Part shown: positions 6,967 through 30,334 of the stretch, piece after piece | How positions within the stretch are numbered: position 1 is the stretch's first letter | Layout of the letters: each line of letters begins with the position of its first letter | Source of the DNA: Octopus bimaculoides | Taxonomy: Eukaryota | DNA length: 32,455 bases | Assembly (NCBI RefSeq): GCF_001194135.2 | Contig: NC_068984.1 | Location: 101,750,520 to 101,782,974 of the forward strand | Reading direction: 5' to 3' | Translations under genes and position numbers: made by a program | The notes under the pieces: model-generated | Databases searched by the model: none | What the model was told of the DNA's origin: nothing | Seen by the model: only the letters and a program-made list of their open reading frames with translations

Positions 6967-7501
6967 NNNNNNNNNNNNNNNNNNNNNNNNNNNNNNNNNN
7001 NNNNNNNNNNNNNNNNNNNNNNNNNNNNNNNNNNNNNNNNNNNNNNNNNNNNNNNNNNNNNNNNNNNNNNNNNNNNNNNNNNNNNNNNNNNNNNNNNNNN
7101 NNNNNNNNNNNNNNNNNNNNNNNNNNNNNNNNNNNNNNNNNNNNNNNNNNNNNNNNNNNNNNNNNNNNNNNNNNNNNNNNNNNNNNNNNNNNNNNNNNNN
7201 NNNNNNNNNNNNNNNNNNNNNNNNNNNNNNNNNNNNNNNNNNNNNNNNNNNNNNNNNNNNNNNNNNNNNNNNNNNNNNNNNNNNNNNNNNNNNNNNNNNN
7301 NNNNNNNNNNNNNNNNNNNNNNNNNNNNNNNNNNNNNNNNNNNNNNNNNNNNNNNNNNNNNNNNNNNNNNNNNNNNNNNNNNNNNNNNNNNNNNNNNNNN
7401 NNNNNNNNNNNNNNNNNNNNNNNNNNNNNNNNNNNNNNNNNNNNNNNNNNNNNNNNNNNNNNNNNNNNNNNNNNNNNNNNNNNNNNNNNNNNNNNNNNNN
7501 N
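6967..7501. other. Assembly gap (other gaps: 8461-9308, 17235-17244, 18894-19773, 22055-22612, 24144-24397, 30598-30607)
   Basis: N runs, several bordered by (TA)n or other repeats. Confidence 0.99.
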
Positions 7502-8460: not shown

Positions 8461-9741
8461 NNNNNNNNNNNNNNNNNNNNNNNNNNNNNNNNNNNNNNNN
8501 NNNNNNNNNNNNNNNNNNNNNNNNNNNNNNNNNNNNNNNNNNNNNNNNNNNNNNNNNNNNNNNNNNNNNNNNNNNNNNNNNNNNNNNNNNNNNNNNNNNN
8601 NNNNNNNNNNNNNNNNNNNNNNNNNNNNNNNNNNNNNNNNNNNNNNNNNNNNNNNNNNNNNNNNNNNNNNNNNNNNNNNNNNNNNNNNNNNNNNNNNNNN
8701 NNNNNNNNNNNNNNNNNNNNNNNNNNNNNNNNNNNNNNNNNNNNNNNNNNNNNNNNNNNNNNNNNNNNNNNNNNNNNNNNNNNNNNNNNNNNNNNNNNNN
8801 NNNNNNNNNNNNNNNNNNNNNNNNNNNNNNNNNNNNNNNNNNNNNNNNNNNNNNNNNNNNNNNNNNNNNNNNNNNNNNNNNNNNNNNNNNNNNNNNNNNN
8901 NNNNNNNNNNNNNNNNNNNNNNNNNNNNNNNNNNNNNNNNNNNNNNNNNNNNNNNNNNNNNNNNNNNNNNNNNNNNNNNNNNNNNNNNNNNNNNNNNNNN
9001 NNNNNNNNNNNNNNNNNNNNNNNNNNNNNNNNNNNNNNNNNNNNNNNNNNNNNNNNNNNNNNNNNNNNNNNNNNNNNNNNNNNNNNNNNNNNNNNNNNNN
9101 NNNNNNNNNNNNNNNNNNNNNNNNNNNNNNNNNNNNNNNNNNNNNNNNNNNNNNNNNNNNNNNNNNNNNNNNNNNNNNNNNNNNNNNNNNNNNNNNNNNN
9201 NNNNNNNNNNNNNNNNNNNNNNNNNNNNNNNNNNNNNNNNNNNNNNNNNNNNNNNNNNNNNNNNNNNNNNNNNNNNNNNNNNNNNNNNNNNNNNNNNNNN
9301 NNNNNNNNATATATATGAATGAAGTCAAACCAAGTAATGATATTCTGATAAAATCCCAAACTTCTGTTCTTTGACAGAAGTTTTGGGTTTTAGTTGAGAT
9401 GCTTTGATATAACTAAAGCAAGTGTTGATACATCTTAATTCATACTGGAAAAGAAGTCAGTGGTGAGTAAACAAACAGTGAAAAGTGAACAGTTTATTGC
9501 TAGCTATTCTGTTGAACATTGCATTCCCTTGGTAAACATTAATCATCTTCTGTAAGTATGTAAGAGAGCATTTTTGGACATTAAAACTGCTGAAAATTAT
9601 CAATGGAAAGAACAAAATTTCCTCATCTTAGGATGGAATAGACTTTCGTGAATAAACACTGAGAGTACCTATCTGTAAGACATAAAAGTTTTCTGCCATA
9701 ACTGAAGGAAGTTTAGCTTTTCAGTTACCCAAATGTTGGGT

Positions 9742-13794: not shown

Positions 13795-13917
13795 AATCAG
13801 TTGAAATTGAGGATAATTCTACAATTCATCATTGCTGATGGTGTTTTTATCATTCTACAAGAATCATCACATTTTCCAATGATCTACACATCTGAGCTTG
13901 CTTGAGGGTTATACATC
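13795..13917 (+). other. 5' UTR part of coding exon 1 (implies an upstream non-coding exon that was not located)
   Basis: Strong polypyrimidine tract plus cag acceptor at 13771-13794, with stop codons upstream of the ATG. Confidence 0.55.
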
Positions 13918-14008
13918 ATGAATGAAACCACAACATTCCAGCCATCTACACAATCATTAATCACGTCTCACCCAGTTACACAGTCATCCAACAATGATGT
14001 AATAATAG
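13918..14008 (+). CDS. Coding exon 1 of an uncharacterised 139-aa single-pass membrane protein (MNETTTFQPSTQSLITSHPVTQSSNNDVII-G)
   Basis: The exon starts after a pyrimidine-rich acceptor (tttccttttcag|, 13794/13795). There is an in-frame TGA just upstream of the ATG at 13918. The donor G|gtatat at 14008/14009 is phase 1 and matches exon 2. Confidence 0.75.
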
Positions 14009-14120
14009 GTATATCTTACGTGTATCACTTTAGTTCTTGAATGTTTATGTAAATTGAGACACCATCTGTATTAAAATAATCAAGCTATTTATTCATTTCG
14101 TCACCACATCTTAATATATA

Positions 14121-15331
14121 TTGGGTCATCCCATAAATAATGCGGGCTTTTTTCAATTACATGAACTAAAAATCGGAGGGGGACAGGATAAACTAACTAC
14201 ATGAACTTGCTATAAAAGCAGGTAGTAATTTTACTTCGTCCTTATTCTTAGTGCAAGTTTGGAAGAGTGCTTTTCAATTTGAACAGTTATTTTTTCAAAG
14301 CTATAATGGAAGTGACAAAGGAGCATATTTGGCATATTTTGCTAGAAAAGTGTGAGGAATATAAATACAGTATGTGGGGATCAGTCAATAAGTGTAACCA
14401 GTGTCAATGGTGGTTCCAGAAATTCCATGTCAGAAACTACAGCCTAGAAGACAAGCTTTGTCCTGGAAGATCTGTAGAACTTGACGAGGACGTCCTGCAA
14501 ACCCTGGTAGAACAAAATCCCATCATTACTGTTAAGGATCTAGCAGAGAAGCTTGGATTTGGTCATTCAACCATTTATTGACACCTGTGTGCCATTGGGA
14601 AAGTCAGCAAATTGGGTCAGTGGGTTCCTCACAAATTTTCCAAGTCTAACCATGTGCAGAGAGTGAATGTGTGCTCTTCTATGTTGTCATGTCACACAAA
14701 TGAACCTTTTTTGGACTGAATAGTGACTGGTGATGAGAAATGGATTCTCTATAAAAATGTCAAGTGCCAAAGACAGTGGGTAAGGAAAGGAGAAACACTG
14801 GCACTCATGCTAAAGAAGGTCTTTACCCAAGTAAGATGTTATCTGTTTGGTGGGATATGAAAGGTTTAGTCCACTTTGAACTTTTAAACCCAAACCAAAC
14901 GATAACAAAGGAGATATACTGCGAATAGCTTGAGCAGCTTAAATTAGCACTAGAAGAAAAATGACCATCTTTGGTTTCAAGATGAAAGGTGTTCTTCCAT
15001 TACAATAATACTCAGCCACATACAGCAAGAATGACACTCCAAAGGCTGGAGCAGTTTGAATGGGAAATGATGCCCCACCCACCACATTCGCCAGACATTG
15101 CCCCATCTGATTACCATTTATTCCGCAGTCTTCAAAATCATTTGGATGGAAAAAATATGAATTCTGTAGACAAGGTAAGAACAGTAATGGAAAAGTATTT
15201 TTTGTCACAAACAAGTGAATTTTGGAAGAAGGGCCTTTCAAGTCTACCAGATAGATGGAAAAACATTGTAGAAAATGAAGGAGAGAATATTTTAGATTAA
15301 AAAAAAACGCATTATTTATGGAATGACCCAA
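14121..15331 (+). mobile_element. Near full-length inactive mariner (DD34D) transposon in intron 1
   Basis: TIR TTGGGTCATCCCATAAATAATGCG / CGCATTATTTATGGAATGACCCAA with TA TSDs (14119-20, 15332-33). Transposase motifs WVPH, VTGDEKW, HSPDIAPSDYHLF, with stops and frameshifts. Confidence 0.95.
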
Positions 15332-15370
15332 TAAAATGAATGTGTGTTTGTTTATGTGTGTATGTAGGTT

Positions 15371-15412
<42 letters not shown>

Positions 15413-15470
15413 TGTGTGTGTGTGTGTTTGAATATATGCATTTAGCTATGTGTATATGTTTGTGTGTATA

Positions 15471-15745
15471 CAGGGCCAGCACCAGGAAGTGCAGGACCCA
15501 ATTAGAGAATTGTCAGTGGGGCCCTCTACTCTATAAAAGCTAAAGACTGATGTTTTATGCATCATGTAGTATACCAGTCCCTTCCAAAAAAGCATTGAAG
15601 GATCGAAGCTCCACCATTAGCCACAATGATATACTAAAAAGCGAAAGCTTATATGAGAGTTTTAATGTTTTATTACAAGTCAAGCGTGTGTGTGTGTGTG
15701 GCCCAATCTGAACAAATCAGTCTAACTTTCTTAAAACTGTCACTG
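15471..15745. mobile_element. hAT-like MITE with 8-bp TSD
   Basis: Ends CAGGGCCAGC and ACTGTCACTG (imperfect TIR). TSD TGTGTATA at 15463-15470 and 15746-15753, though the flank is microsatellite-like. Confidence 0.55.
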
Positions 15746-16044
15746 TGTGTATATCACTAATCCTTATCTGTTCCAAGTAAGATAATATTTCTCCGTGGCT
15801 AGACATGTTTACATGGTAGTACACTGCTTGTAAGATGGTGATACTTGTTTTATAATTATCATGTGATGTCAAGACAAAGAGACAGTAACATTCCCATCTT
15901 CCAACACACATAAACACATGCATACACACACATACATGTGCACATATACATACACATTACACACACACACATTTTTTTATTATCATCAGTCAACCATAGA
16001 CGAAACTATAGTATCTTCATGTCATAACGTTTTCTATGGAATTA

Positions 16045-16205
16045 TATGCAACAGGTTTCTTTCAGTTTTCATTTACCAAATCCACTCACAAGGCTTTGGT
16101 TCATCAAGGATTATAGAAGTTACTTGCCCAACATACCACACAGTAGACTGAACCCAAAGCCAAGTGGCCGGGAAGCAAACTTTTTAATCACATGGCCATG
16201 CCTGC
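16045..16205 (-). mobile_element. SINE head fragment
   Basis: TTTCAGTTTTCATTTACCAAATCCACTCACAAGGCTTTGG family match. Confidence 0.7.
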
Positions 16206-16584
16206 ACCTACACACACACGTACGCACACACACTCACACATTTATAGATTTAGTTTTTAAAAAATTCCAAGAAGGAAATAAAATTGGCCTCTTTCTCTGT
16301 GATTATCTCATTGTTTAAATATTTTTTTTTCTTGTACAAACAGACTGCTTGTGCATGCAGCCTTCCCTTCAACCTGTTGCCTATTCTATATGCCTACACT
16401 ATCTAATCTCCTATCTGTTGTGCTTACTGTATACCCTTTCATTTTCCCATCATCTCTTCTACACACCATACCATTGAGAAGAAAGCTGAGGAAATGATAA
16501 AGGACCAGGAGATGTGATTTGCTGTACTTGATAAGACACATCAAGCTAAGTAAAATCGCTGTCTTCCACACATACAGGCTTGTA

Positions 16585-16853
16585 CTTTCAGGTGCTGGTA
16601 CCACTTGAAAAGTACCCATGTCAGTGGTGCATTAATGCACCCATGCCAGTGCTGCATAAATGCACCCTTGTCTGTGGCACATAAAAAGCACCCAGCACAC
16701 TCTGTTAAGTGGTTGGTATTAGGAATGGTATCCAGCCATAGGAACCATGCCACAACAGATAGTTAGAGTCCGGACAGCTCCCTGCTAGCCAGCTCCATAT
16801 CAAACCATCCAACCCATGCCAGCATGGAGAGTGGATGTTAAATGATGATGATG
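16585..16853 (+). mobile_element. RTE LINE 3' end
   Basis: AAAAGCACCCAGCACACTCT...CCAACCCATGCCAGCATGG...ATGATGATG. Confidence 0.75.
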
Positions 16854-17094
16854 AAAGCAATCAGTTTATGCATATTTATCACTGGGGTTGATTGGAATCA
16901 ACTTAACACCTTCTCCAAACTTGCTGGCCTTGTGTCAAAATTCGAAACCAATATTTTTCCATAGCCAGAAATGTTTACCATGGAAGACTGGAAATGAACA
17001 ACACTGCATATATGATAGGGATACTCATTCGCAACCATTATACGTTGTCACAGCAAGGGTAGACACAAACGTGTGCACACATACACGCATACTG

Positions 17095-17225
17095 ATGATG
17101 GGCTTCTTTCAGTTTCCCCTCACAAAGCTTTGGTCTGCTCAGGGCTATAGTGGAAGATACTGTGGTGTGAGACTGAACCTGAGATCGCATGGTTGGGAAC
17201 AAACTTCTTAACCACACAGCCTTAT
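17095..17225 (-). mobile_element. SINE head fragment
   Basis: GGGCTTCTTTCAGTTTCC...TTAACCACACAGCC. Confidence 0.7.
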
Positions 17226-17244
17226 CTGCACTAGNNNNNNNNNN

Positions 17245-17281
<37 letters not shown>

Positions 17282-18006
17282 TTTCTTCCTTATGATAATT
17301 GTTAGTTATTTCTTCCTTGTGGTTCAGGATTACTAGAATCTCCTTGGAAGCTGCATAGTTTACTTCCAAAGGAGATCCTAGTTATATCTGAATCATAAGA
17401 AAGAAATAACAACAGAATGGACCTAGGTGCTGAGACCATAGTAGCATGCACTGGAGGAAGGAGGAAATGGTAACAGACGAATCAACAATCAAAGGGAAAC
17501 AATTCTAACAAATTCTTTCTTAGGCATAGAAATAGAAGGATGAACTGCTAGAAAAAGCAGCCTCAAAACTAATATCCATAATGAATTCAGAAATAATACC
17601 AGGCCAGCAGGAGAGAGAATAGGAGAGACATCTAGAAAAGTCAATAACACTATAAATAATAGAAATAGGCATACAGGTTTATGCAACTGTGCTAGAGGTA
17701 AACTATGCCTATTGGACAAAGAATGTTAACTGAACAACCTGGTCTATAGATGCCAAGTTACCTGGGAGGGAACAGAATACTTTTATAGGGTCCTGGTTCT
17801 CTTTTTTTCAAAAGGAAACTAGCCAATTGTTTAAATTCTTTTAGAAATAGGAAAAAAATAAATAATACAAGCCTAAGCAAACTAATTTGGTCAATTAGAG
17901 ACAAAAATAATAGCTATTCCATCGATTGGGAACTAATTGGTATTGTTAAGCCTTATCAAATAGGGGGAAATAGACGAAACCTATGTGTAGAGGAACTTTA
18001 CCAGAT

Positions 18007-20696
18007 CATCATTATCATCATCATCGTTTAACGTCCGCTTCCATGCTAGCATGGGTTGGACGATTTGACTGAGGACTGGCGAACCAGATCGCTGCACCAG
18101 GCTCCAATCTGATCTGGCAGTTTCTACAGCTGGATGCCCTTCCTAACGTCAACCACTCCTAGAGTGTAGTGGGTGCTTTTACATGCCACCGGCACGAAGG
18201 CCAGTCAGACAGTACTGGCAATGGCCACGCTCAAATGGTGTTTTTTACATGCCACCTGCACAGGAACCAGTCCAGTTCGAATGTTTTTTCACGTGTCACT
18301 GGCACAAGTGCCAGTAAGGCGACGCTGATAATGTTCACGCTTAAATGGTGCTTTTTACATGCCAACCGCACAGAAGCCAGACTACTGCTCTGGCAATGAT
18401 CATGCTTGGATGGTGCTATTAGCATTCCACTGGCACGGGTGCCAGTCAACGAATTTGGTTCGATTTCAATTTCACTTGCCTCAACAGGTCTTCGCAAGCA
18501 GAGTTTAGTGTCCAATGAAGGAAAGGTACGCATAAGTGGGCTGGCTACACTGCTGGCAAAGGCCACAGGTTATAGTCTCACTTGGCTTGCTGGGTCTTCT
18601 CATGCACAGTATATTTCCAAAGGTCTTGGTCACTAGTCATTGCCTCGGTGAGGCCTAATGTTCGAAGTTCGTGCTTCACCACCTCATCCCGGGTCTTCTT
18701 GGGTCTATCTCTTCCACAGGTTCCCTCAACCACTAGAGCGTGACACTTTTTCACACAGTTATCCTCATTCATTCTCGCCACATGATCATACCAGCGCAAT
18801 CGTCTCTCTTGCACACCATAACTGATGCTTCTTAGGTCCAACTTTTCTCTCAAGGTACTTACACTCTATCGAGTATGCACACTGACATTACACNNNNNNN
18901 NNNNNNNNNNNNNNNNNNNNNNNNNNNNNNNNNNNNNNNNNNNNNNNNNNNNNNNNNNNNNNNNNNNNNNNNNNNNNNNNNNNNNNNNNNNNNNNNNNNN
19001 NNNNNNNNNNNNNNNNNNNNNNNNNNNNNNNNNNNNNNNNNNNNNNNNNNNNNNNNNNNNNNNNNNNNNNNNNNNNNNNNNNNNNNNNNNNNNNNNNNNN
19101 NNNNNNNNNNNNNNNNNNNNNNNNNNNNNNNNNNNNNNNNNNNNNNNNNNNNNNNNNNNNNNNNNNNNNNNNNNNNNNNNNNNNNNNNNNNNNNNNNNNN
19201 NNNNNNNNNNNNNNNNNNNNNNNNNNNNNNNNNNNNNNNNNNNNNNNNNNNNNNNNNNNNNNNNNNNNNNNNNNNNNNNNNNNNNNNNNNNNNNNNNNNN
19301 NNNNNNNNNNNNNNNNNNNNNNNNNNNNNNNNNNNNNNNNNNNNNNNNNNNNNNNNNNNNNNNNNNNNNNNNNNNNNNNNNNNNNNNNNNNNNNNNNNNN
19401 NNNNNNNNNNNNNNNNNNNNNNNNNNNNNNNNNNNNNNNNNNNNNNNNNNNNNNNNNNNNNNNNNNNNNNNNNNNNNNNNNNNNNNNNNNNNNNNNNNNN
19501 NNNNNNNNNNNNNNNNNNNNNNNNNNNNNNNNNNNNNNNNNNNNNNNNNNNNNNNNNNNNNNNNNNNNNNNNNNNNNNNNNNNNNNNNNNNNNNNNNNNN
19601 NNNNNNNNNNNNNNNNNNNNNNNNNNNNNNNNNNNNNNNNNNNNNNNNNNNNNNNNNNNNNNNNNNNNNNNNNNNNNNNNNNNNNNNNNNNNNNNNNNNN
19701 NNNNNNNNNNNNNNNNNNNNNNNNNNNNNNNNNNNNNNNNNNNNNNNNNNNNNNNNNNNNNNNNNNNNNNNNNAGAGGTTTATCTTTGGCTAGGTATTTC
19801 TCCTGCAGCTGTCTTACCAGAAATACGGTATCAGTGGTGCTTTTCCCTGTTACAAACCCAAACTGCATCTCATCTAAATTGACCCTCTCCCTAATTAGTT
19901 GGGCTATGACCCTCTCCGTGACCTTCATTACCTGATCCAACAACTTGATACCTCTGTAATTATTTGTATCTAAAGCATCACCTTTACCTTTGTAGCAGTT
20001 GACTATGGTGCTGCTACATCAGTCATTAGGTATGACTCCTTCCTGTATCATCTGGTTAACAATACGGGTGACTAGGCTATAGCTGATACTGCCAGATATT
20101 TTGAGCATCTCTGCAGTGATTCCTGATGGGCTGGGGGCTTTCCCTGTCTCCATACTCTTAATTGCTTTATCTACCAAGGTACTGTCAACTCGGATAGCTG
20201 GTCCCTCTGTTGGGTCGACATTCGGCAGACTCTCTTTCTCCCTTTCATTTCCTTTATTGAGGAACCTTTCATAGTGACATCTCCAAACCTCTCTTTTTGC
20301 AGCCTCATTTAGTGCAAGTGACCCATCAACCATGCGGACACATATCTCTCCTCTGACATCACGATTCTCTCTCACACACTGTCTTGCAACATGAAATACC
20401 TAAAGTCTTTGGTCCTCACGGTACAGAACATTGGCAAATTTTTTCTTATCTGCTAAATAAGCCTGCCTCCTAGCTTCCCTTCTAGCAGTCTGATACAATT
20501 CCCTGCTACCACCGTTCTTCCAGTCCTTCCAAGCCTGTTTCTTTTCTTTAATGGCCCTGTCAACAACATTGTTCCACCACCACGTTATTTTGGGTCGAGA
20601 GGGGACTTTGCACCATCCACAGATCTGGTCAGTGGCCCTCAGCAGGTTGTCCCGTAGAAACCTCCAGTTTTGTTCTACATCGTGTGAAGCTATATC
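18007..20696 (-). mobile_element. 5'-truncated RTE-clade LINE (RT region, partly in an N gap), inactive
   Basis: Minus-strand frames KITWWWNN, DEMQFGFVTGKSTTDTVFLVRQLQEKY and RRLRWYDHVARM...; (GAT)n tail; TSD CCAGAT at 18001-18006 and 20697-20702. Confidence 0.92.
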
Positions 20697-20724
20697 CCAG
20701 ATATTTACAACAAAACATACGTTA

Positions 20725-21150
20725 GAAAGTTAAAGAAGTGATTTTTTTAATTCTCAATCGCAGAATAGTGCTAATAATATAGCCTGAACAAGATAAACTA
20801 CCCCTATTTTGCAGAGAAAAGTGTAGGTGGCTAGCTGTGGACACAAACTCACATCCCCGTGATTATGCGCCACGATGCTTTGACCGATTAAGCTAAACTA
20901 CCCACTACAAATTCCTCTGCAAATTTAAGATATATAAATCTCGCTTTATGAGACGCTCTCATATGTTAAATTCAAATAACGACAAACGTAAATAAACAAA
21001 CGAAGTTTGCTTTTAGAAGCGTTGAGATGTGTTAGAAAGTTAAAGAAGTGATTTTTAAAATTCTCAATCGCAGAATAATACTAATAATATAGCCTGAACA
21101 GAATAAACTACCCCTATTTTGCAGAGAAAAGTGTAGGTGGCTAGCTGTGG
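20725..21150. mobile_element. 426-bp insert with 123-bp terminal direct repeats and a tRNA-like core
   Basis: Repeats 20721-20843 and 21031-21153 differ at about 6 positions. TSD ACATACGTTA (20715-24) and ACATATGTTA (21151-60). Removing the insert restores the Penelope reading frame. Confidence 0.75.
20829..20902 (-). pseudogene. tRNA-like cloverleaf (CAT anticodon, Met-like) with a degenerate T-loop
   Basis: GGTAGTT TA GCTT AATCGGTCA AAGC AT CGTGG CGCATAA TCACG GGGAT GTGAG TTTGTG TCCAC AGCTAGC C, followed by TTTT 8 nt downstream. The B box is broken. Confidence 0.55.
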
Positions 21151-21707
21151 ACATATGTTAATTACAACAAGATACGAACAAGCTCTAAGAAGTTTACACA
21201 AACACAAACAGTAGGACCTTTTAAGAGATATAGGGAAAATTCTAGATAGCCAACACCCCAGCAACAATTGAGCTTGATGTGACAAATAGAATAACATAAC
21301 CTAAACATTAAAAATTTTTAATACCTATCATTAATAAAAGATTAAAAAAAAATACCCTACCCAAGGTGTAACATAAATCAGAGCAGCCCAACCCAAAAAA
21401 TGAATATAAATAAACATGAACTCTTCAATACAAATACTACACTCAAAATCAAAACAAAACACGTGCAACCATTAAAATGAATAAAGAACTTTATAAAAAC
21501 ACTAATCTAGACCTTGACCTATTTTAGATCAAGCTCTAACTTTGGACAGCAGCTTGTGTGTGTCTCAGGTCAGCAGCACAGGCCTATAAATAACAACACC
21601 CCACCCCTCACAGAACACTAACAGAAATTTACTTCAATCAGTTCACTTCGAGGATGACCAAATGGACGGACTCTGAACTGACAATAATGCAAGGATTTCA
21701 GGGTTAT

Positions 21708-21752
21708 CGAACGCCGACGAAGGGAAATAACCCTGAAATCCGGATCTGTTCG
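21708..21752 (+). ncRNA. Minimal type I hammerhead ribozyme (U4C variant) with CCGG helix III loop
   Basis: CGAACG CCGACGA AGGG aaataa CCCT GAAA T CCGG A TC|TGTTCG. Helices I-III are all complementary; predicted cleavage after 21746. Confidence 0.75.
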
Positions 21753-22612
21753 TGCTACAGATCATGGTGAGAGGGATAACTTCCCTTGGCAAACAGGACA
21801 CAGTAGTGTGTCGATAAGCCAGCTGGAGGAGATGTCCTCCTGGGGCTAAAAGCAACAGTAACATCCACCCCTAGGGGTCAGCCACACTTAAGTGGCAATA
21901 TACTACACTTTATCGTGCAGTTACTGTTAATACTTCATTTAGAGAATTAACATATATATATATATATATCTGTAGAACTTATCCCTTCGATAGGTCCCCA
22001 TGTATGGAGACAATTGTATATATATATATATCATTATCATCATCATTTAACAGTNNNNNNNNNNNNNNNNNNNNNNNNNNNNNNNNNNNNNNNNNNNNNN
22101 NNNNNNNNNNNNNNNNNNNNNNNNNNNNNNNNNNNNNNNNNNNNNNNNNNNNNNNNNNNNNNNNNNNNNNNNNNNNNNNNNNNNNNNNNNNNNNNNNNNN
22201 NNNNNNNNNNNNNNNNNNNNNNNNNNNNNNNNNNNNNNNNNNNNNNNNNNNNNNNNNNNNNNNNNNNNNNNNNNNNNNNNNNNNNNNNNNNNNNNNNNNN
22301 NNNNNNNNNNNNNNNNNNNNNNNNNNNNNNNNNNNNNNNNNNNNNNNNNNNNNNNNNNNNNNNNNNNNNNNNNNNNNNNNNNNNNNNNNNNNNNNNNNNN
22401 NNNNNNNNNNNNNNNNNNNNNNNNNNNNNNNNNNNNNNNNNNNNNNNNNNNNNNNNNNNNNNNNNNNNNNNNNNNNNNNNNNNNNNNNNNNNNNNNNNNN
22501 NNNNNNNNNNNNNNNNNNNNNNNNNNNNNNNNNNNNNNNNNNNNNNNNNNNNNNNNNNNNNNNNNNNNNNNNNNNNNNNNNNNNNNNNNNNNNNNNNNNN
22601 NNNNNNNNNNNN

Positions 22613-22647
<35 letters not shown>

Positions 22648-22760
22648 GTTTATTTGTGTGTGGATATATCTATACATATACTCCCAGAACCACACTAATA
22701 GCTTAGGAGTGAAATTTAGGATTTCTCAGTTTTCTGTGAATCAATTTTGATAAAACTTTT

Positions 22761-24124
22761 CCCAGCTGGTTTGCACACTAGGGCAACACCATTGTTATAT
22801 TTTCATTATTCTGTGTAACATACTTTCTTTTTTATTTCAGATTATTCAGTTTTTGGGTGAATCACATTTACAGCATCTTTCCACTCTAAGAACAGTGGGA
22901 TGTGGAAAAGGCCTTAATGATGAAAAGTCTGTCATCATCAAGGAAAGTGCTAAAGGCACCTCTCTTCATGCCACTGTAGAGAAGTTAAGTCGTCATGAGG
23001 ACACGGTTAGATGATTCCTGAAGGATCCTTCACCAAGGAAGAAACGATTCGATTGTGAAACCTCCAAGACTGTGACAGCTAGGAATTTAAGGACTATTGG
23101 CCGCAAGTTATATGAGAAACCAGTACAAACAAGCAAAGCCATTCTCACTGCCTCCAGACTTCCTCATATACTGATAACCACCAGAAATCGCATCTTCAGG
23201 AGCATGGCTTCTGTGCAAGAAACTGCCTCCTTTAATGCCCTGTCACAGGAGTTTGGGGCTTCAACGGGCCCAAAAGTACATGACGTTAGACATGAGTTGT
23301 GTTCTGTTCACTGACAAAACCAAGGCAACTTTTGATGGACCTGATGGTTGGGCAAATGGTTGGGTCTATTTTGGAGATGAGTGTCACCAATGTTTACAGT
23401 GTCAATAACAGGGTGGAAGAGTCATGTTGTTGGCTGGTATCATTGGGGATAGACTAGTTGGCCCAGTCAGGGTGCCTGAAGGGGTTAAAGTGATTGCAGC
23501 CACCTACTGCAATCTCTTGAAGGAGGCCTTGGATCCTTGGTAGATGACATACTACTGTCACTTTTAAGAAATCTCATGTTCATGCATGACAATGCTTCTG
23601 CTAGGACCACCCAAACATTACTAGGGTCTTGTGGCATACAAGGTGAAAGGTTGATGGTGTGGCCACCAGCATCTCTGGATTTCAACCCTATCTTTGATCC
23701 ATCATTAAACAAGATGTTTATGCTGATGGACGCCAATTTATGTCGAAAGACATCTTATGGGCAACCATCAAAGCTAGAGTGGAGGCAGTCCCACCTGCTA
23801 TTATGAAGAAATTGACAGATTCCATGACTAATAGGGTTTTTGAAGTTATCTGTCGAAATGGCACTCATGTAGCTAAATAATAATTCATTATGTCAATAAA
23901 TGTTATATTATTATGGTTTTCTGTTAAAAATATACTCAATGTATGCTTAATGTATCATTACCCTTCGTTTTCTGAAAAAACATGTCCAGATGGGCAATTT
24001 TCATTTAAAATTTATTAGCATGGTTCACCCTAAAACTGAAGAATCTGAAATAAAAAAGAAAGGACATTACACAGAATAATGAAAATATAACAACGGCGTT
24101 ACCACAGTGTGCAAACCAGCTGGG
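22761..24124 (+). mobile_element. Decayed Tc1-like transposon with ~105-bp TIRs
   Basis: TIRs 22761-22864 and 24021-24124 are reverse complements. Remnant motifs DGPDGWANGW, VMLLAGIIG, FMHDNA, WPPASLDFNPI. Confidence 0.9.
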
Positions 24125-24397
24125 TGTGTATGTATGTATATATNNNNNNNNNNNNNNNNNNNNNNNNNNNNNNNNNNNNNNNNNNNNNNNNNNNNNNNNN
24201 NNNNNNNNNNNNNNNNNNNNNNNNNNNNNNNNNNNNNNNNNNNNNNNNNNNNNNNNNNNNNNNNNNNNNNNNNNNNNNNNNNNNNNNNNNNNNNNNNNNN
24301 NNNNNNNNNNNNNNNNNNNNNNNNNNNNNNNNNNNNNNNNNNNNNNNNNNNNNNNNNNNNNNNNNNNNNNNNNNNNNNNNNNNNNNNNNNNNNNNNN

Positions 24398-24450
<53 letters not shown>

Positions 24451-24689
24451 TATACATACACACACACACACATATATTTGTGTGTACATGTATAAGTGTA
24501 TGAATATGGCCATGTATGCATGGGTGTATATGGATGTGTTTGTGTATGATATATACACAGATGTGCAGATCTTGGCCCTCACTTGGTGTCCTTAATATTA
24601 AAATAGCTTGATTCTAATAAATCCAACAAACAATTAATAATAATAATGATATATATGCATAATGTAAATCTTTTTTCTGTTTGCAATAG

Positions 24690-24759
24690 GTGTCTCTATA
24701 TCTGTGGTTCTTTTAATTCTGGTTATCTCTCTAGTTCTACTTTGCAAATATAAACCACA
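24690..24759 (+). CDS. Coding exon 2, transmembrane helix (G-VSISVVLLILVISLVLLCKYKP-Q)
   Basis: Acceptor ttttttctgtttgcaatag| and consensus donor |gtaagt. The 70-nt exon enters in phase 1 and leaves in phase 2, matching both neighbours, and encodes a hydrophobic run followed by CKYK. Confidence 0.85.
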
Positions 24760-25037
24760 GTAAGTGTATTTTATTTCTCATAGTTCTGAATATATTGATG
24801 TCAGCCCTTATCTGTGTGTCATTCTTAATCCAGCTGTGTTTAATACAGCTATGATTACCAATGTTGTTATATGTACATGCTGATAAAGCTTAAATTTGAG
24901 AGGATGAATAAATTTGTGATGTCAGAATTATATTCAATTATGTCAGGGCATATAAGAGCTGGATTGCTGCCTTCAGATTTGATCCTGGTTCTCAAATGTG
25001 AATATGAAATAATTATAATTTATCATATTGATACAAA

Positions 25038-25300
25038 CTTGGCCTAGTGGTTAGGGTGTTTCAATTCCTAGACCGGGTAAAGCATTGTGTTCTTGAGCAA
25101 AACACTTCATCTGACCTTGCTCTGCAGTCACTTTGACACCTGACACTTAGTACACCATGCACCTGTTCAGGCAACGTCAATTTGATGGAGAGAGTGAGCT
25201 AATGTATGGCTTGAACATTTGAAATATCTATAAACAAATCATTTGTGCAGGCTGTTCACCAAAAGCTGAACTCTCATACATTATCTTCAAAGGGAGAGTC
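25038..25300 (+). mobile_element. Diverged tRNA-derived SINE
   Basis: GGCCTAGTGGTTAGGG...TTCCTAGACCGGG...GTTCTTGAGCAAAACACTT. Confidence 0.55.
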
Positions 25301-25365
25301 CATCCATACATTTGGAAAAATAGGTTATAGTTCAAAATTGAGAGAGAACTGCGCTGGTATGACCA

Positions 25366-25912
25366 TGTGATGCATATGTATGAGGACAGCTGTGTGAAGA
25401 GGTGTCACACTCTAACAGTGGATGGAACCTGTGGAAGTAGCAGACTCAGGAAGATATGGGATGAGGTAGTGGAGCATGATCTTCGAATCTTGGGCCTCAC
25501 AGAGACAATGACAAGTGACCAAGACCGTTGGAGATATGCTGTGCTTGAGAAGACCCCTCAAGCCAAGTGAGATCATAGTCGTGACTGATGCCAGTGTCAC
25601 CTGACTGGCATGTAAAAAGCAGCATTTGAGTGTGGCCAATGCTAGGGCCACCTGACTGACACCCATGCCAATGGTACATTAAAAGCACCATTAGAGCGAT
25701 GCCACTACTGCCTGACTGGCACCCATGCCAGTGGCATGTAAAAAGCACCTACTACACTCTCAGAGTGCTTGGCGTTAGGAAGGGCCTCCAGTGGTAGAGA
25801 CTTTGCCAAATTGGATTGGAGCCTGGTGCAGCCTCTCAGCTCACCATTTCTCAGTCAAACTGTGCAAGCCATGCCAGCATGGAAAGCGGACATTAAACGA
25901 TAATGATGATGT
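25366..25912 (+). mobile_element. RTE LINE 3' end (ORF C-terminus, 3' UTR, tail)
   Basis: MYEDSCVKRCHTLTVDGTCG...WDEVVEHDLR...AVLEKTPQAK*, homologous to the 18578-18853 ORF. Confidence 0.9.
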
Positions 25913-26061
25913 CATTTACCATCGTGTTGTCAAACACTTTGTGGATTTTTGATACAGTGCCTATCCATCATGTCAAAGAGAATGTAATAATTCTTTCTAC
26001 TATAGGCACAGGACCTAAAAGTTTGGGCAGGTTAGGGCGCTAATTTATTACATTGATTATC

Positions 26062-26260
26062 CAACCCATGCTAGCATGGAAAGCGGACGTTAAACGATGA
26101 TGATGATGATGACCCCAGTGCTCAACTGGTACTTAATTTATTGATCCTGAAAGGATGAAAGGCAAAGTTGACCTCTGCAGAATTTGAACTCAGAATGAAA
26201 AGCCAGAAGACATGTTGCTCAGCATTTTGTCCTGTGTGCTAACAATTCTGCCAACTTGCT
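26062..26260. mobile_element. 50-bp RTE tail (+) inserted into a third-family SINE (-)
   Basis: CCAACCCATGCTAGC...GATGAT followed by GACCCCAGTGCTCAACTGGTAC...CTGCCAACTTGC. Confidence 0.7.
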
Positions 26261-26599
26261 ACCTTATAATAATAAGAAATAAATGCATTGACTTGTTATG
26301 CTATTAATTTTATATCACATTCATTGAGTAGTGTCAAGTTAAGTATGCAAGATGCTTCCAGCATCTCAGCAGCTTCCTTGAAAGTCCTGCAGCTATACTG
26401 TGATGCCTTTAACAAGTTTCAGCTATCCTTATTCCATTCATACTTTTTGTTCAGAAATCTGAAATCCTTTTCCTATAGGCACAACACAAATGCCACAACA
26501 TTATTTAATCTGAAATTTTGATAAGAAATTCAATAGTATAAAGTATTGGACCATCAACTCATCATATGTCCTACCTTAAAACATTTCTTTCAACTTCAT

Positions 26600-26885
26600 C
26601 ATCATGATGTAAGCTGGAGAGCTGTACAAGGCTCCAGTCTGATTTGGATGGGTTTCTATGGCTGGATGTCCTTCCTAATGCCAACCACTCCAAGAGTGTA
26701 GTGGGTGCCTTTTACATGTCACTGGCACTGACCACAACTATGATTTCACTTGGCCTGACATGTCTTCTCAAATACAGCAAATCATCAAAGGTCTCAATCA
26801 CTTGTCATTGCCTAACATCCGAAGGTCATGCTTCACCACCTCATCCCATGTCTTCCTGGGTCTACCACTTCCACAGTTAGAGATC
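26600..26885 (-). mobile_element. RTE LINE 3' fragment
   Basis: Reverse complement of parts of 25400-25900. Confidence 0.75.
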
Positions 26886-26994
26886 GGTACTTCTTTAGCT
26901 GTTAAAAGTAGATCCCAGATCTGTTAGGAATGTTGTATTCAATAGATTGCTATCCTGTCTCGTAATAGGTTTATCTTTCATTTATGTAATACTA

Positions 26995-27182
26995 CAAGGG
27001 AGTGCTGAAACGTTCCTGGTTTTAAGGGCATCACAAAAGGCCTTTTACAGGGCTTAGAGAATCTGAAGGATCACAACAATAAGTGTGAATCTGAGAAGAG
27101 AATACGTTGAATAAAATCATAATTAACTGATCCTCCTGTATTTTCTTTTACCCAAAGTCAGGAACTTTTCTGCACCCCCTTC
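26995..27182. mobile_element. Mariner-derived MITE
   Basis: TIR CAAGGGAGTGCTGAAACGTTCCTG / CAGGAACTTTTCTGCACCCCCTTC, with TA on both sides. Confidence 0.7.
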
Positions 27183-27589
27183 TATATATAAACAATATTT
27201 AAATTAGCTCTTTTCATTATCCATCCCTAGACCTTTGAAGATGTTTAGCCTTATATAAGTTAGTTTTGTTCTTCAACTATTATGTTCCTGGAAATTAACT
27301 GAGAATCTTGATAAACGAGTTTGTTTGTTGTAATGTATTGCAGGCAACAACATATATTATCGAAGTTATGTTCATTTCTAATTGAACACTCTTCTTTCAT
27401 CAGTAAATGAAATGATTGGTATTATAAAAATACCAATCATCAGATAACTTGAAATTTGTACTGTAAAAGGATTTAATAATTAATAATATAATTGAGAGTA
27501 ATTGCTATGTGTGATAGGTTAAAGACATATGCAAGAATATTGGTTTCAGATTTTGGCACAAGGCCAGCAATTTTAGGGGAGGGAATGAG

Positions 27590-27750
27590 TCAATTATATT
27601 GACCTCATTATTCAGCTGGTATTTATTTTATCAACCCTGTAAGGATGAAAGGCAAAGTCAACTTCAGCAGAATTTGAACTCAGAACCTAAACGAAATGTC
27701 ACTAAGAATTTTGTTTGGCATGCTAATGATTCTGCCAGCTTGCTGCTTTC
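27590..27750 (-). mobile_element. Third-family SINE, diverged
   Basis: GGATGAAAGGCAAAGTCAACTTCAGCAGAATTTGAACTCAGAA...CTGCCAGCTTGC. Confidence 0.7.
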
Positions 27751-28200
27751 ATATGTAAGAATTGTTAGTAATATGGAATCATATTATTATTTGGTTAGGA
27801 AGTCACTGAAAACTTCACGAAGCATAAAGCAATACTCAATCTAACAGAATCCATTTTTCTTCTTGCTGTGTCCATGGAAGTATTTGGTTTTATCACCAAT
27901 TCTGAAAAATGGATGCTGTATGCCTTTCATGATACATATTTAAAAGTAGTGAGACTGAATCATTGAGAATGAAGAGAACATTATATTTACTTTGTAAGTG
28001 ATAGAGGATGACTCGTTGCCCCTTAGCTCTTGAATGGTACTCTTTCAATTTATATATTTATTCAATATAAATCTATAAGTTAAAGTAGTGAGGAAAGGCA
28101 AGCAATTAGTCAAAGCAGGACATGGACATTTGATTTCATTTAATCCAGTCTAAAAATTTAACTGCATAACGAATGGTAAAAATACTACAAACTGGTAAAC

Positions 28201-28297
28201 ATATTCTCTAACAGCTGTTTCTGGGATATCCCAGCTATTGGAGCCTTGTATTGAGCGAAGACTTTATAAGTCGGGTATTCCATCATCAGAGAAATAT
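28201..28297 (-). ncRNA. Type I hammerhead motif with long helix II and AGCT helix III loop
   Basis: Minus strand: ATATTTCT CTGATGA TGGaATAcCC...GGaTATcCCA GAAA C AGCT G TT|AGAGAATAT. Core and helix III are intact. Confidence 0.65.
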
Positions 28298-28728
28298 AGG
28301 CTAGACAGTGGAAAGAATGTTCCTCATCAATGATATTTGTTGTAGCTCATTATGTCCAGGAAGGCAAGAGAGTCCAATTCAATTCATTTGGATCAGGTCT
28401 TCTTCAGAAAGAATGGTTAAGTGGTATGTCAAAGTGAGAAGGGGGAAAGATATGTTATACATACAGTACACTATATTAAGTGAAAATGAAAGTGAATGCT
28501 ACCAGATCCATCATTATGCATGGAATAAAGATACTTTCTGATGAGAGAAAAGATAAAAAAGTAAGAGGTATGCATTGGATATGTATTATTCAGTATATTG
28601 AAGGGTCTTCCCTCTAGAGGGAAAGTGAATGCTAATAGTTCCAAAGTTGTGTGAATAATGAGAGGAGGAATAAATAGTATATTCAATATAAACTTATTAT
28701 CATAAGATGATTCCTGTTTCTTTTTTAG

Positions 28729-28987
28729 ATTATTTCCATGTTTTAGTCACAATTACCAAAGAGCACGTCAATCATCTCAACTTGGTTTATCATTTGAGCA
28801 AGACAAAGATTACCAACATGAAACAGATGTTCCTGACATTGTGTCAAATGATGAAGGATATTTTTATGATGAAATATTTGGAAAATCTGCTTTTACTGAT
28901 GAAACTACCAACCATTCCATAACAAACTTGTTTTCAATAACTGATTATGATGATAATCCTGAGCGATTTACTTCTGAGCGTTTCTGA
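28729..28987 (+). CDS. Coding exon 3, acidic tyrosine-bearing tail (LFPCFSHNYQRARQSSQLGLSFEQDKDYQHETDVPDIVSNDEGYFYDEIFGKSAFTDETTNHSITNLFSITDYDDNPERFTSERF*)
   Basis: Acceptor gtttcttttttag|A completes CA|A (Gln) from exon 2. It is followed by 85 open codons in very AT-rich DNA and ends at TGA 28985-28987. Confidence 0.85.
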
Positions 28988-29691
28988 ATGGATATTAAAA
29001 TCTGTTAATGGCAGGTAAATTATTCTGTTGTTCTATTTCTGGCAACTTGTTACTACAATACGACGCAAAAACTTTCAAAAGACTGCCATTAGAATTGTCT
29101 GTTAAAAAGAAACGGTTTCTGTGGTCAAGAAATAATACAGCTGTAAACATACATCTTAGTATTAATCTTACATTAATCTTATATGGATTTTGTAAATAGG
29201 CAAAGTGGAAGAAACAAAATAAGGATTTCTTTTTATTTTAGAAAAACAACTAGATTTAACAAATATGGAGTAGTTTCCTTCTATAAACTGTCGGTTGTTA
29301 TTTAACCCCAGGTTAAAATACTTTCAAGCAGTTAACACTAATTTTTCTTCTTTGGATATAATGTCTCTAGGATTTCATTATCCAATGTGCCCTTTCTCTT
29401 TTTAACATATATAGGAAATTTGATTGCTATTTCTGGTTCTTGAAACAACCATGTAGAGGCTCCTCCATTTGGGCGTATAAACTACTAACTAAAACAAATA
29501 ATATTTTTGTAGGTGACAACAATTCTCAAACAAGGGGAAATAACTTTAAAAGAAAATTTTAAAATGGTGTTGTTTCATGGTGAAATTTAATTCTCCATAC
29601 CAATTCCTTGGTCAATATAAACATCATCCGTCAATTTATCATGGACATATTTTATTATTCAAAAATGAATTTCATATTTTTGTATATTTTG

Positions 29692-29697
29692 AATAAA
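29692..29697 (+). promoter_or_regulatory. Candidate polyadenylation signal AATAAA
   Basis: AATAAA about 700 nt after the stop codon, followed by T-rich sequence. The motif is common in DNA this AT-rich. Confidence 0.25.
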
Positions 29698-29879
29698 AAT
29701 TTTATTTTCCTTCAAATGATTCTTCTGTTACTCAAGCATTTTAATTATGAAATACTTTTTTTTATTAAAAGCAAACATTTAAAACTCATTATTAAATGTC
29801 TCCTTTCTCAACATGACATTGAGCCATCATGGTTGTATTGTCAAATACTAGGCATCGTGTTTTCATTGTATCTTTATCT

Positions 29880-30090
29880 TTTAGCATTTACTTGTTGCAG
29901 TTATTGGACTAAGGTCGTGCTGAGACCCTGCCTTAAAGGGGTCTTAGACAAATTGGCCCCAGTACTTATTTTGTTTATCAGTATGGTTACTTATTCTAGC
30001 ATTCTCTTAAGCCAAACCACAAAGTTACAAGAATGTAAACAAACTATAATCAGCTGTCAAGTGGTTTGAAGTGATAAATGCAGACACATA
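29880..30090 (-). mobile_element. Highly diverged SINE tail
   Basis: TTTACTTGTTGCAGTTATTGGAC...CCCCAGTACTTATTTTG resembles the family tail. Confidence 0.5.
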
Positions 30091-30334
30091 TAAATATGTG
30101 TCTGTATATATACTGTCTCTTTTGTTGACTTTTTTCATTTTTAGACAAAACTACAGAACATAACAAGAATACTTTCAATTAAATATCAAAATTGTCTCTT
30201 ATTCCTAATTAAAAACCAAAATTGATTATCTATTGAGTGTTTGCAGAAAACAATATTGCCTTTATTGGTTTCCATCCAGTTTGTTTGCATTTTTTCTGCA
30301 TGCCACACATTTGATAATTTTTAGGGCTCTTCAA

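Follow-up and report, generated by a model that had tools for sequence, protein, structure and literature searches.

Transmembrane adaptor proteins (TRAPs) combine a short ectodomain and one transmembrane (TM) helix with a long tail that carries several (up to 10) tyrosine motifs, and LAT, PAG, NTAL, and LIME have a juxtamembrane CxxC palmitoylation motif (PMC2803307). In this study, we analyzed a stretch of 32,455 nucleotides from Octopus bimaculoides (assembly GCF_001194135.2, contig NC_068984.1, positions 101,750,520 to 101,782,974 of the forward strand), called the window hereafter. A first-pass annotation had joined three exons of the window into a 139-residue membrane protein with LAT/PAG/NTAL-like architecture. 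We found that this protein, the product of LOC106868157, belongs to a previously undescribed family that is present in all major mollusc classes sampled. Membership in this family, whose cytoplasmic tail carries an exceptionally conserved box, is the new information about the locus.

The segments 13918-14008, 24690-24759, and 28729-28987 of the forward strand (91, 70, and 259 nt) join to 420 nt, which encode 139 residues and a stop codon. The features of the gene are as follows.

13918..14008, forward strand: coding exon 1, from Met1 to the first base of codon 31; its end begins the TM helix
13918-13998, forward strand: ectodomain in exon 1, residues 1-27, Ser/Thr-rich, with an N2-E-T4 sequon
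14009..24689, forward strand: intron 1, 10.7 kb, with transposon-like insertions and four assembly gaps
24690..24759, forward strand: coding exon 2, remaining TM helix (residues 31-48, to 24742), then juxtamembrane C49-K-Y-K-P-Q54
24760..28728, forward strand: intron 2, 4.0 kb, gap-free, with donor GTAAGT and acceptor TTTTTTAG
28729..28987, forward strand: coding exon 3, entire cytoplasmic tail L55-F139, TGA stop at 28985-28987
28739..28741, forward strand: Cys58, a conserved juxtamembrane cysteine and candidate S-acylation site
28760..28777, forward strand: R65-A-R-Q-S-S70, a degenerate version of the family's basic RRRxSSxSS and candidate basophilic-kinase site
28850..28933, forward strand: conserved cytoplasmic box, residues 95-122, DEGYFYDEIFGKSAFTDETTNHSITNLF, which holds Y98, Y100, and YDEI
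28859-28876, forward strand: Y98-I103, within the box

The three phase-matched exons proposed in the first-pass annotation gave exactly the proposed translation. All exon borders are of the GT/AG type, and splicing is in frame. Exon 1 meets intron 1 at AG/GTATAT, exon 2 lies between a pyrimidine tract with CAATAG and the donor GTAAGT, and exon 3 follows the acceptor TTTCTTTTTTAG. The residues that had been singled out were also confirmed, namely the tyrosines at 51, 63, 82, 98, 100, and 127, the cysteines at 49 and 58, and 11 Ser/Thr among residues 1-27. The gene had been described as absent from the track of open reading frames (ORFs). This is true only because the exons are short (longest 259 nt), and the locus does have an annotation: the protein is 100% identical to the NCBI entry "uncharacterized protein LOC106868157 [Octopus bimaculoides]" (GCA_001194135.2, chromosome CM046604.1, near 101.75 Mb). 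The gene exists as modelled, but annotation already contained it.

The gene was then compared with its orthologs. Gap-free loci of O. sinensis (L002, GCA_006345805.1) and O. vulgaris (L003, GCA_951406725.2) carry the same three exons in the same order and strand and with the same splice-site sequences. Nucleotide identity to O. vulgaris/sinensis was 94.5% for exon 1, 98.6% for exon 2, and 92.3% for exon 3. The O. vulgaris/sinensis ortholog has 139 residues and 86% identity, and a partial model from Argonauta hians has 61% identity. A further ortholog of 142 residues (P0004; 45% identity over 92% of the query) is a single unbroken ORF in contigs of 94 public sequencing runs. Ten of these contigs, each 1.1-1.9 kb long, were examined. 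Six of the ten runs are cited in transcriptome papers on the cuttlefish Sepia esculenta (PMC10466719, PMC10571815, PMC10141105, PMC11917092); for the first of these, a study of larvae, the citation stands in the data-availability statement. On the strength of these citations the P0004 contigs are therefore read as spliced mRNAs. LOC106868157 is a real gene of the expressed type.

The start codon was supported in the same material. In 10/10 P0004 contigs, where the protein starts with MNVTTT, the reading frame contains a stop codon 24 nt before the ATG, and the window has an in-frame TGA 15 nt before its ATG (13903-13905). The MN-x-TT start is common to the octopus protein, Sepia P0004, and P0007. 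Since in-frame stops precede the ATG in both Sepia and the window, an upstream exon with a signal peptide or a larger ectodomain, which the first-pass annotation had named as a refuting condition, is very unlikely.

The family was collected by an iterated word-seeded search followed by an exhaustive HMMER profile search, in which the tail alignment was compared with 1.84 billion representatives. This search returned 56 clusters at E<=1e-3, 41 of them at E<=1e-10, and the octopus protein (P0001) matched at E=3.8e-21. The matched proteins are 60-313 residues long, and the match always lies at their C-terminus. All members with a source name come from molluscs, that is, from cephalopods, a chiton (Liolophura), bivalves, and gastropods, and no relative outside the molluscs was detected among the members with a source name. 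The bivalves comprise scallops (Mizuhopecten, Pecten, Ylistrum) as well as clams and others (Ruditapes, Mya, Pinctada, Sinanodonta). The gastropods are Aplysia, Elysia, Plakobranchus, Physella, Pomacea, Babylonia, Nucella, Haliotis, Patella, and Lottia. The first-pass annotation had recognised no homolog; the annotated protein in fact has relatives across Mollusca. A literature search with the gene ids of six homologs and with motif strings found no paper on the family.

The plan of three coding exons, with the ectodomain on the first, the TM helix and about five residues on the second, and the whole tail on the third, recurs in Pecten maximus and Aplysia californica. The same start of the last exon was seen in two further genomic contigs. 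The recurrence of the three-exon plan supports common descent of the members rather than convergence within the family. The defining features of the family, a single TM helix, the tail box, and the three-coding-exon plan (the last in O. vulgaris, Pecten, and Aplysia), were all found.

Copy number was noted alongside. Cephalopod genomes showed one family copy each. Two members from Patella caerulea, P0046 and P0069 (SNE40_000447 and SNE40_000446), sit on one contig under consecutive locus tags and so point to a tandem duplication in limpets. One gene call from Logan (P0005, L014 1882-2190) runs through two TGA codons by taking them for Trp, in the manner of genetic code 4. The true ORF of P0005 ends in DDDPFR followed by a stop, and its contig represents the final exon of a chiton gene with a close match to P0009 of Liolophura sinensis.

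The box of about 27 residues, D-x-Y-[FY]-Y-D-E-[IV]-F-x2-S-x-F-x-D-x2-T-x6-L, occurs in every member. Across 63 sequences, ten of its positions are invariant or nearly so. D101, E102, S107, F109, D111, and L121 are invariant (63/63), T114 is kept in 62/63, position 103 is always I or V, and position 104 has F in 56 members and Y in 6. At position 98, 59/63 members have Y and 4 have F; at position 100, 59/63 have Y, 3 have F, and one (Lottia) has M. Non-conserved tyrosines had been set beforehand as a refuting condition, and for DEGYFYDEI these counts show that the tyrosines are conserved. A second motif named for the same purpose, DYDD, fared differently: DYDD, Y63, Y82, and Y127 are found only in octopods in the family alignment. 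The non-cephalopod tails carry an [ED][LM]F[ST]I-x-D motif, together with a C-terminal [IV]PDL-x-F[KR] or LD[FL]DFETLGIKI.

Constraint on the box was also seen between two octopus species. Residues 95-128 show no non-synonymous change between O. bimaculoides and O. vulgaris over 82 non-synonymous sites, and the remaining 243 of the 325 non-synonymous sites carry all 20 changes. By our own simple arithmetic, the chance of finding 0/20 changes in this segment under uniformity is about 0.003. The ratio of non-synonymous to synonymous rates (dN/dS) is 0.94 overall and 0.42 for the TM and juxtamembrane region. In this pair, change in the ectodomain, the linker, and the extreme C-terminus is close to neutral.

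AlphaFold2 (AF2) was run twice, with 19 and then with 63 sequences. It was confident for the TM helix only (residues 25-51, pLDDT 94-97). The tail scored 50-68; it was modelled with low confidence as an extended stretch, and a short helix (112-121) comes directly behind the aromatic-acidic residues. Since pLDDT of the tail is low and one short helix is all it shows, the tail is predicted to be disordered and to carry short linear motifs that fold on binding. The tail is acidic, as had been noted, with 17 D/E and 4 K/R in residues 77-139.

The octopus protein has an ectodomain of 27 residues, a TM helix at residues 28-48, a tail of 91 residues, and no signal peptide. According to the positive-inside rule, basic residues collect on the cytosolic side of a TM helix. 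In the 44 members for which the TM helix was recovered, the 15 residues after it hold 188 K/R and 8 D/E, and the 15 residues before it hold 24 K/R and 65 D/E. Because of this K/R excess after the helix, the N-terminus is predicted to lie outside and the C-terminus inside. The short ectodomain, the AF2 helix, and the charge bias agree with the short-ectodomain, single-TM architecture proposed in the first-pass annotation.

The N-terminal region is about 30-45% Ser/Thr and has 1-5 NxS/T sequons in most full-length members; judged by this composition, the ectodomain appears mucin-like, and it is poorly conserved across the family. A Ser/Thr-rich, N-glycosylatable N-terminus, a single TM helix, a length of 100-250 residues, and a basic juxtamembrane stretch are also found in small type III sialoglycoproteins and mucin-like single-pass proteins such as glycophorin C, podoplanin, and endomucin. 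However, the 4.1/ERM- and PDZ-binding tail motifs of these proteins are missing from the mollusc protein, and they in turn lack the YFYDE box. Matches of the Pfam models Podoplanin, Endomucin, and MGC-24 over the ectodomain and TM helix were below cut-offs and compositional.

Behind the membrane, Cys58 is kept in 36/43 aligned family sequences. The first-pass annotation had pointed to cysteines near the membrane; the conserved Cys58 bears this out, but the CxxC motif of LAT, PAG, NTAL, and LIME is missing in the octopus protein, where C49 and C58 are nine positions apart. Several bivalve members have CxxC(xxC) after the TM helix. S-acylation at the conserved cysteine is probable from its position. 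An Arg-rich stretch and a run of Ser follow, with R67 in 48/56 and R68 in 40/56 sequences; the octopus version (RARQSS) is degenerate. By its pattern, this basic stretch is probably phosphorylated on Ser.

To look for known families, Pfam scans were run on the octopus protein, on the full set of 63 family members, and on selected members. Among the matches listed, no model reached its cut-off in any member scanned. The sub-threshold matches (Podoplanin, Endomucin, Amnionless, Myc_target_1, GAPT, RAMP, DAG1, and others) all lie over the TM/mucin-like region. A profile search of the PDB with the tail alignment gave 0 matches at E<=10. FFAT, gamma-ear/GAE, hemITAM, ITAM, RVxF, and CtBP motifs were compared with the box by eye, and each fails at an invariant position.

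Two gastropod members bear domain names in UniRef. P0061 (Elysia marginata A0AAV4HKC7) is called "Cadherin Y-type LIR-motif domain-containing protein", and P0058 (Plakobranchus ocellatus) is called "Neurofascin/L1/NrCAM C-terminal domain-containing protein". The cadherin-tail model PF01049 (60 positions) had no match at E<=10 in P0061 and six relatives; as a control, a human E-cadherin tail scored 107 bits. With hhalign, the family profile reached a probability of 0.8% for the E-cadherin tail and of 0.08% for an alignment of three cadherin catenin-binding sequences, and hmmsearch --max gave 1.6 bits. For P0058, Pfam at E<=10 lists ten weak TM-type matches and no L1-family tail model. The two labels disagree with each other and are likely marginal matches to acidic-aromatic sequence.

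Taken together, the best explanation is that the protein is a membrane-anchored docking or recruitment platform with a disordered tail, whose box captures a conserved cytosolic partner. We give this reading a probability of roughly 0.55. The ectodomain would be a freely evolving, glycosylated stalk only. Function would sit in short linear motifs of the tail, that is, in the juxtamembrane Cys, the basic Arg/Ser stretch, and above all the box of about 27 residues. The box probably docks its partner through an extended strand and the short helix behind it, and the platform is probably acylated and phospho-regulated. As for the partner, an SH2 domain on phosphorylated YDE[IV] is a tentative suggestion, an Atg8/LC3 protein bound through an LC3-interacting region (LIR) and the AP/clathrin machinery are each slightly less favoured, and some other partner takes up the rest.

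Several points weigh against a docking platform. The candidate motif patterns span just 4-6 residues and are frequent by chance, and none of the candidate motifs accounts for the invariant S107, F109, D111, T114, and L121. Topology, glycosylation, acylation, and phosphorylation are put forward on sequence rules, and the protein could instead serve a channel or receptor as accessory subunit via its TM helix, in which case its tail would be regulatory. A dN/dS near 1 outside the box and the TM helix means weak constraint on about half of the protein. In addition, transcript contigs that encode exactly the O. bimaculoides or O. vulgaris protein are missing from Logan, where only genome records carry these proteins, and so the octopus splice junctions rest on conservation and the Sepia mRNA.

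The first alternative to be weighed is the one proposed in the first-pass annotation, an adaptor of the LAT/PAG/NTAL type. Y98 and Y100 would be phosphorylated by acidophilic or Src-class kinases, and pY-D-E-[IV] would recruit Nck/Dock or Src-family SH2 domains at an acylated anchor. Src-family SH2 domains prefer pYEEI, which YDE[IV] fits, and acidic residues at -3 to -5 suit acidophilic tyrosine kinases, as is generally known. Y-D-E-[IV] is present in 59/63 members with the D and E invariant, and it also fits the Nck SH2 consensus pYDxV (PMC2661883). Like the Nck-binding YDxV sites of nephrin and bacterial Tir, it lies in the cytoplasmic tail of a membrane protein. Nephrin, however, has three such sites, whereas the mollusc protein has one candidate site, placed inside a conserved box of 27 residues.

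Like LAT, PAG/Cbp, NTAL/LAB, LIME, and GAPT, the octopus protein has a short ectodomain, no signal peptide, one TM helix, and a juxtamembrane Cys, in agreement with the description of TRAPs (PMC2803307). It also shares with them an acidic, disordered tail with a tyrosine motif and no enzymatic domain, and CxxC follows the TM helix in some bivalve members. The short ectodomain and the single TM helix of the proposed architecture were thus borne out; CxxC in octopus, several tyrosine motifs, and a TRAP match in Pfam were not. The tail of about 90 residues has a single conserved tyrosine cluster (Y98/Y100) and no YxN sites, and no sequence relationship to TRAPs is detectable. No TRAP model of Pfam (LAT, PAG, LAT2, LIME1, GAPT, and others) reached its cut-off among the listed matches; GAPT had a best E-value of 0.0015, and one scored match over the TM helix reached 13.8 bits against a cut-off of 21.1. 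TRAPs of vertebrates are leukocyte-specific, whereas this family is mollusc-wide.

The pattern of conservation also speaks against an SH2 site. Y100 is replaced by Phe in three members and by Met in Lottia, and Y98 by Phe in four, which is not expected of an obligatory phospho-acceptor. SH2 domains contact their ligands to about +5 from the phosphotyrosine, but conservation of the box runs 21 residues past Y100. Such an adaptor is a minority prospect. The analogy to LAT and PAG is architectural only, and a role in phosphotyrosine signalling is possible at similarly low odds.

The box may also be an extended LIR of the Y/F type, so that the protein would be a membrane receptor or cargo tag for the Atg8 family, possibly phospho-switched on Tyr/Ser as in FUNDC1. 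Canonical LIRs have W/F/Y at position 1, L/I/V at position 4, and acidic or phosphorylatable flanks; their contacts are reported to reach 8-10 residues downstream, and a C-terminal helix can raise affinity (PMC7297954). As a pattern match only, [Y/F]100-D-E-[I/V]103 is present in 62/63 members with D/E at 95-97. The AF2 helix at 112-121 lies downstream of it, and exchange of Y for F is permitted in an LIR. Heterobranch members carry an additional C-terminal D-F-D-F-E-T-L, which resembles the LIR of FIP200.

The likeness to FUNDC1 (YEVL) lies in an acidic run followed by [Y/F]-x-x-[I/V] with a Tyr that is potentially phospho-regulated. Positions +4 to +21 of the box, however, have no counterpart in the LIR definition, and the invariant S107, F109, and D111 go beyond known LIR requirements. 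A four-residue pattern is common by chance, Met100 of Lottia does not fit it, and the "Cadherin Y-type LIR-motif" label of the Elysia homolog was not reproduced. An LIR is doubtful, a little more so than an SH2 site.

To a similar extent, the tail could be a set of sorting signals, namely YxxPhi (YDEI, for AP-2 mu2), a clathrin-box-like L-F-S-I-[DT], and an acidic dileucine-like [DE]xPDL[ILV]. These motifs are defined by ELM-type consensus patterns, and the protein would then be a constitutively cycling endosomal/lysosomal membrane protein or a cargo escort. The family alignment contains [ED][LM]F[ST]I-x-D and the C-terminal [IV]PDL-x-F[KR], and octopus has NLFSITD at 120-126. YxxPhi strictly requires the Tyr and leaves the two middle residues free. 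In the box it is D-E that is invariant and Tyr that is sometimes Phe or Met, opposite to these rules. Octopus lacks PDL-x-F, its first LFSI-like motif is degenerate (GLSFEQD), and all matches are short. Sorting stays in the same doubtful range as the LIR.

A combination of these ideas is about equally speculative. The YFYDE box may be phospho-switchable, such that the unphosphorylated aromatics bind Atg8 or the sorting machinery and pYDE[IV] recruits Nck/Src-class SH2 domains; the protein would then be a mollusc-specific transmembrane signalling adaptor of independent origin, convergent on vertebrate TRAPs and nephrin.

An accessory (beta-type) subunit of a channel, transporter, or receptor, like KCNE, FXYD, or RAMP, would act via the TM helix and the juxtamembrane region. 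As a small, single-TM protein with an N-terminal sequon at residue 2 and no signal peptide, the octopus protein follows the generally known KCNE-type layout, and the constraint on the TM and juxtamembrane region between octopus species is in line with it. However, ISK_Channel was not among the Pfam matches listed, RAMP scored 13.1 bits over the TM helix against a cut-off of 27, and it is the distal tail, not the TM helix, that is most strongly conserved. We consider this alternative improbable. Remote homology to the cytoplasmic tail of classical cadherins (catenin-binding region, PF01049 CADH_Y-type_LIR), which the UniRef name of P0061, acidic-aromatic Y-x-Y motifs, and a by-eye likeness of cadherin YYYDE and DYDYLNEWG-x-RF to the box might suggest, can practically be set aside, since PF01049, the profile-profile comparison by hhalign, and hmmsearch were negative and the second labelled member, P0058, bears a different name.

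The window contains seven runs of N. Four gaps (17235-17244, 18894-19773, 22055-22612, and 24144-24397) lie inside intron 1, and no exon is affected. They separate the sequence block of exon 1 from that of exons 2 and 3. The order and strand of the exons across the gaps are supported because the window is colinear with the gap-free loci L003 and L002. Intron 1 is colinear with the 6.0-kb intron of L003 except for two window-specific blocks, 16535-17651 and 18007-21150; because of these blocks, it is 10.7 kb long in the window and 6.0 kb in O. vulgaris. The blocks take in two of the four gaps; at the remaining two, L003 has 607 bp and 89 bp of ordinary intron. Intron 2 lies inside a block with 89.7% identity to L003. 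There is no sign of a hidden coding exon.

Intron 1 contains ORF fragments that look like mariner-type transposase and LINE reverse transcriptase. A Pfam scan of these ORFs gave no match at E<=0.01. The fragments are listed below.

14267-14581, forward strand: transposon-like ORF fragment of intron 1
14989-15300, forward strand: transposon-like ORF fragment of intron 1
23537-23806, forward strand: transposon-like ORF fragment of intron 1
18578-18853, reverse strand: transposon-like ORF fragment of intron 1
19774-19943, reverse strand: transposon-like ORF fragment of intron 1
20019-20375, reverse strand: transposon-like ORF fragment of intron 1

Microsatellites of the (AT)n/(AC)n type border the larger gaps (24398-24470 and the edges of 6967-7501, 8461-9308, and 22055-22612) and appear as YIYIYI or HTHTHT in ORF translations. 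It is probable that the gaps stand for collapsed repeats and not for unique sequence that is missing.

Downstream of the gene, ATTAAA occurs at 28994, 7 nt past the stop codon, and additional AATAAA/ATTAAA motifs occur 0.7-1.2 kb downstream of the stop (29692-30208 of the window). In O. sinensis and O. vulgaris, a gene with FERM and RING (zf-C3HC4_3) domains, MYLIP-like by these domains, lies about 8 kb downstream on the opposite strand, and L003 also has a 138-residue gene call at 26483-26899.

L002 28652-30452, reverse strand: FERM and RING gene, O. sinensis, outside the window
L003 28643-30401, reverse strand: FERM and RING gene, O. vulgaris, outside the window

The practical value of these results is modest, as they concern one small orphan family and no new mechanism. 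What is new is a searchable family of about 56 clusters for which Pfam has no model, and a short peptide that can be used as bait. The 27-residue motif has hardly changed since the divergence of the molluscan classes, and this implies a cytosolic partner that is just as conserved. If a docking platform is the correct explanation, molluscs, including cephalopods with their large nervous systems and distinct immune cells, would have a lineage-restricted membrane docking protein.

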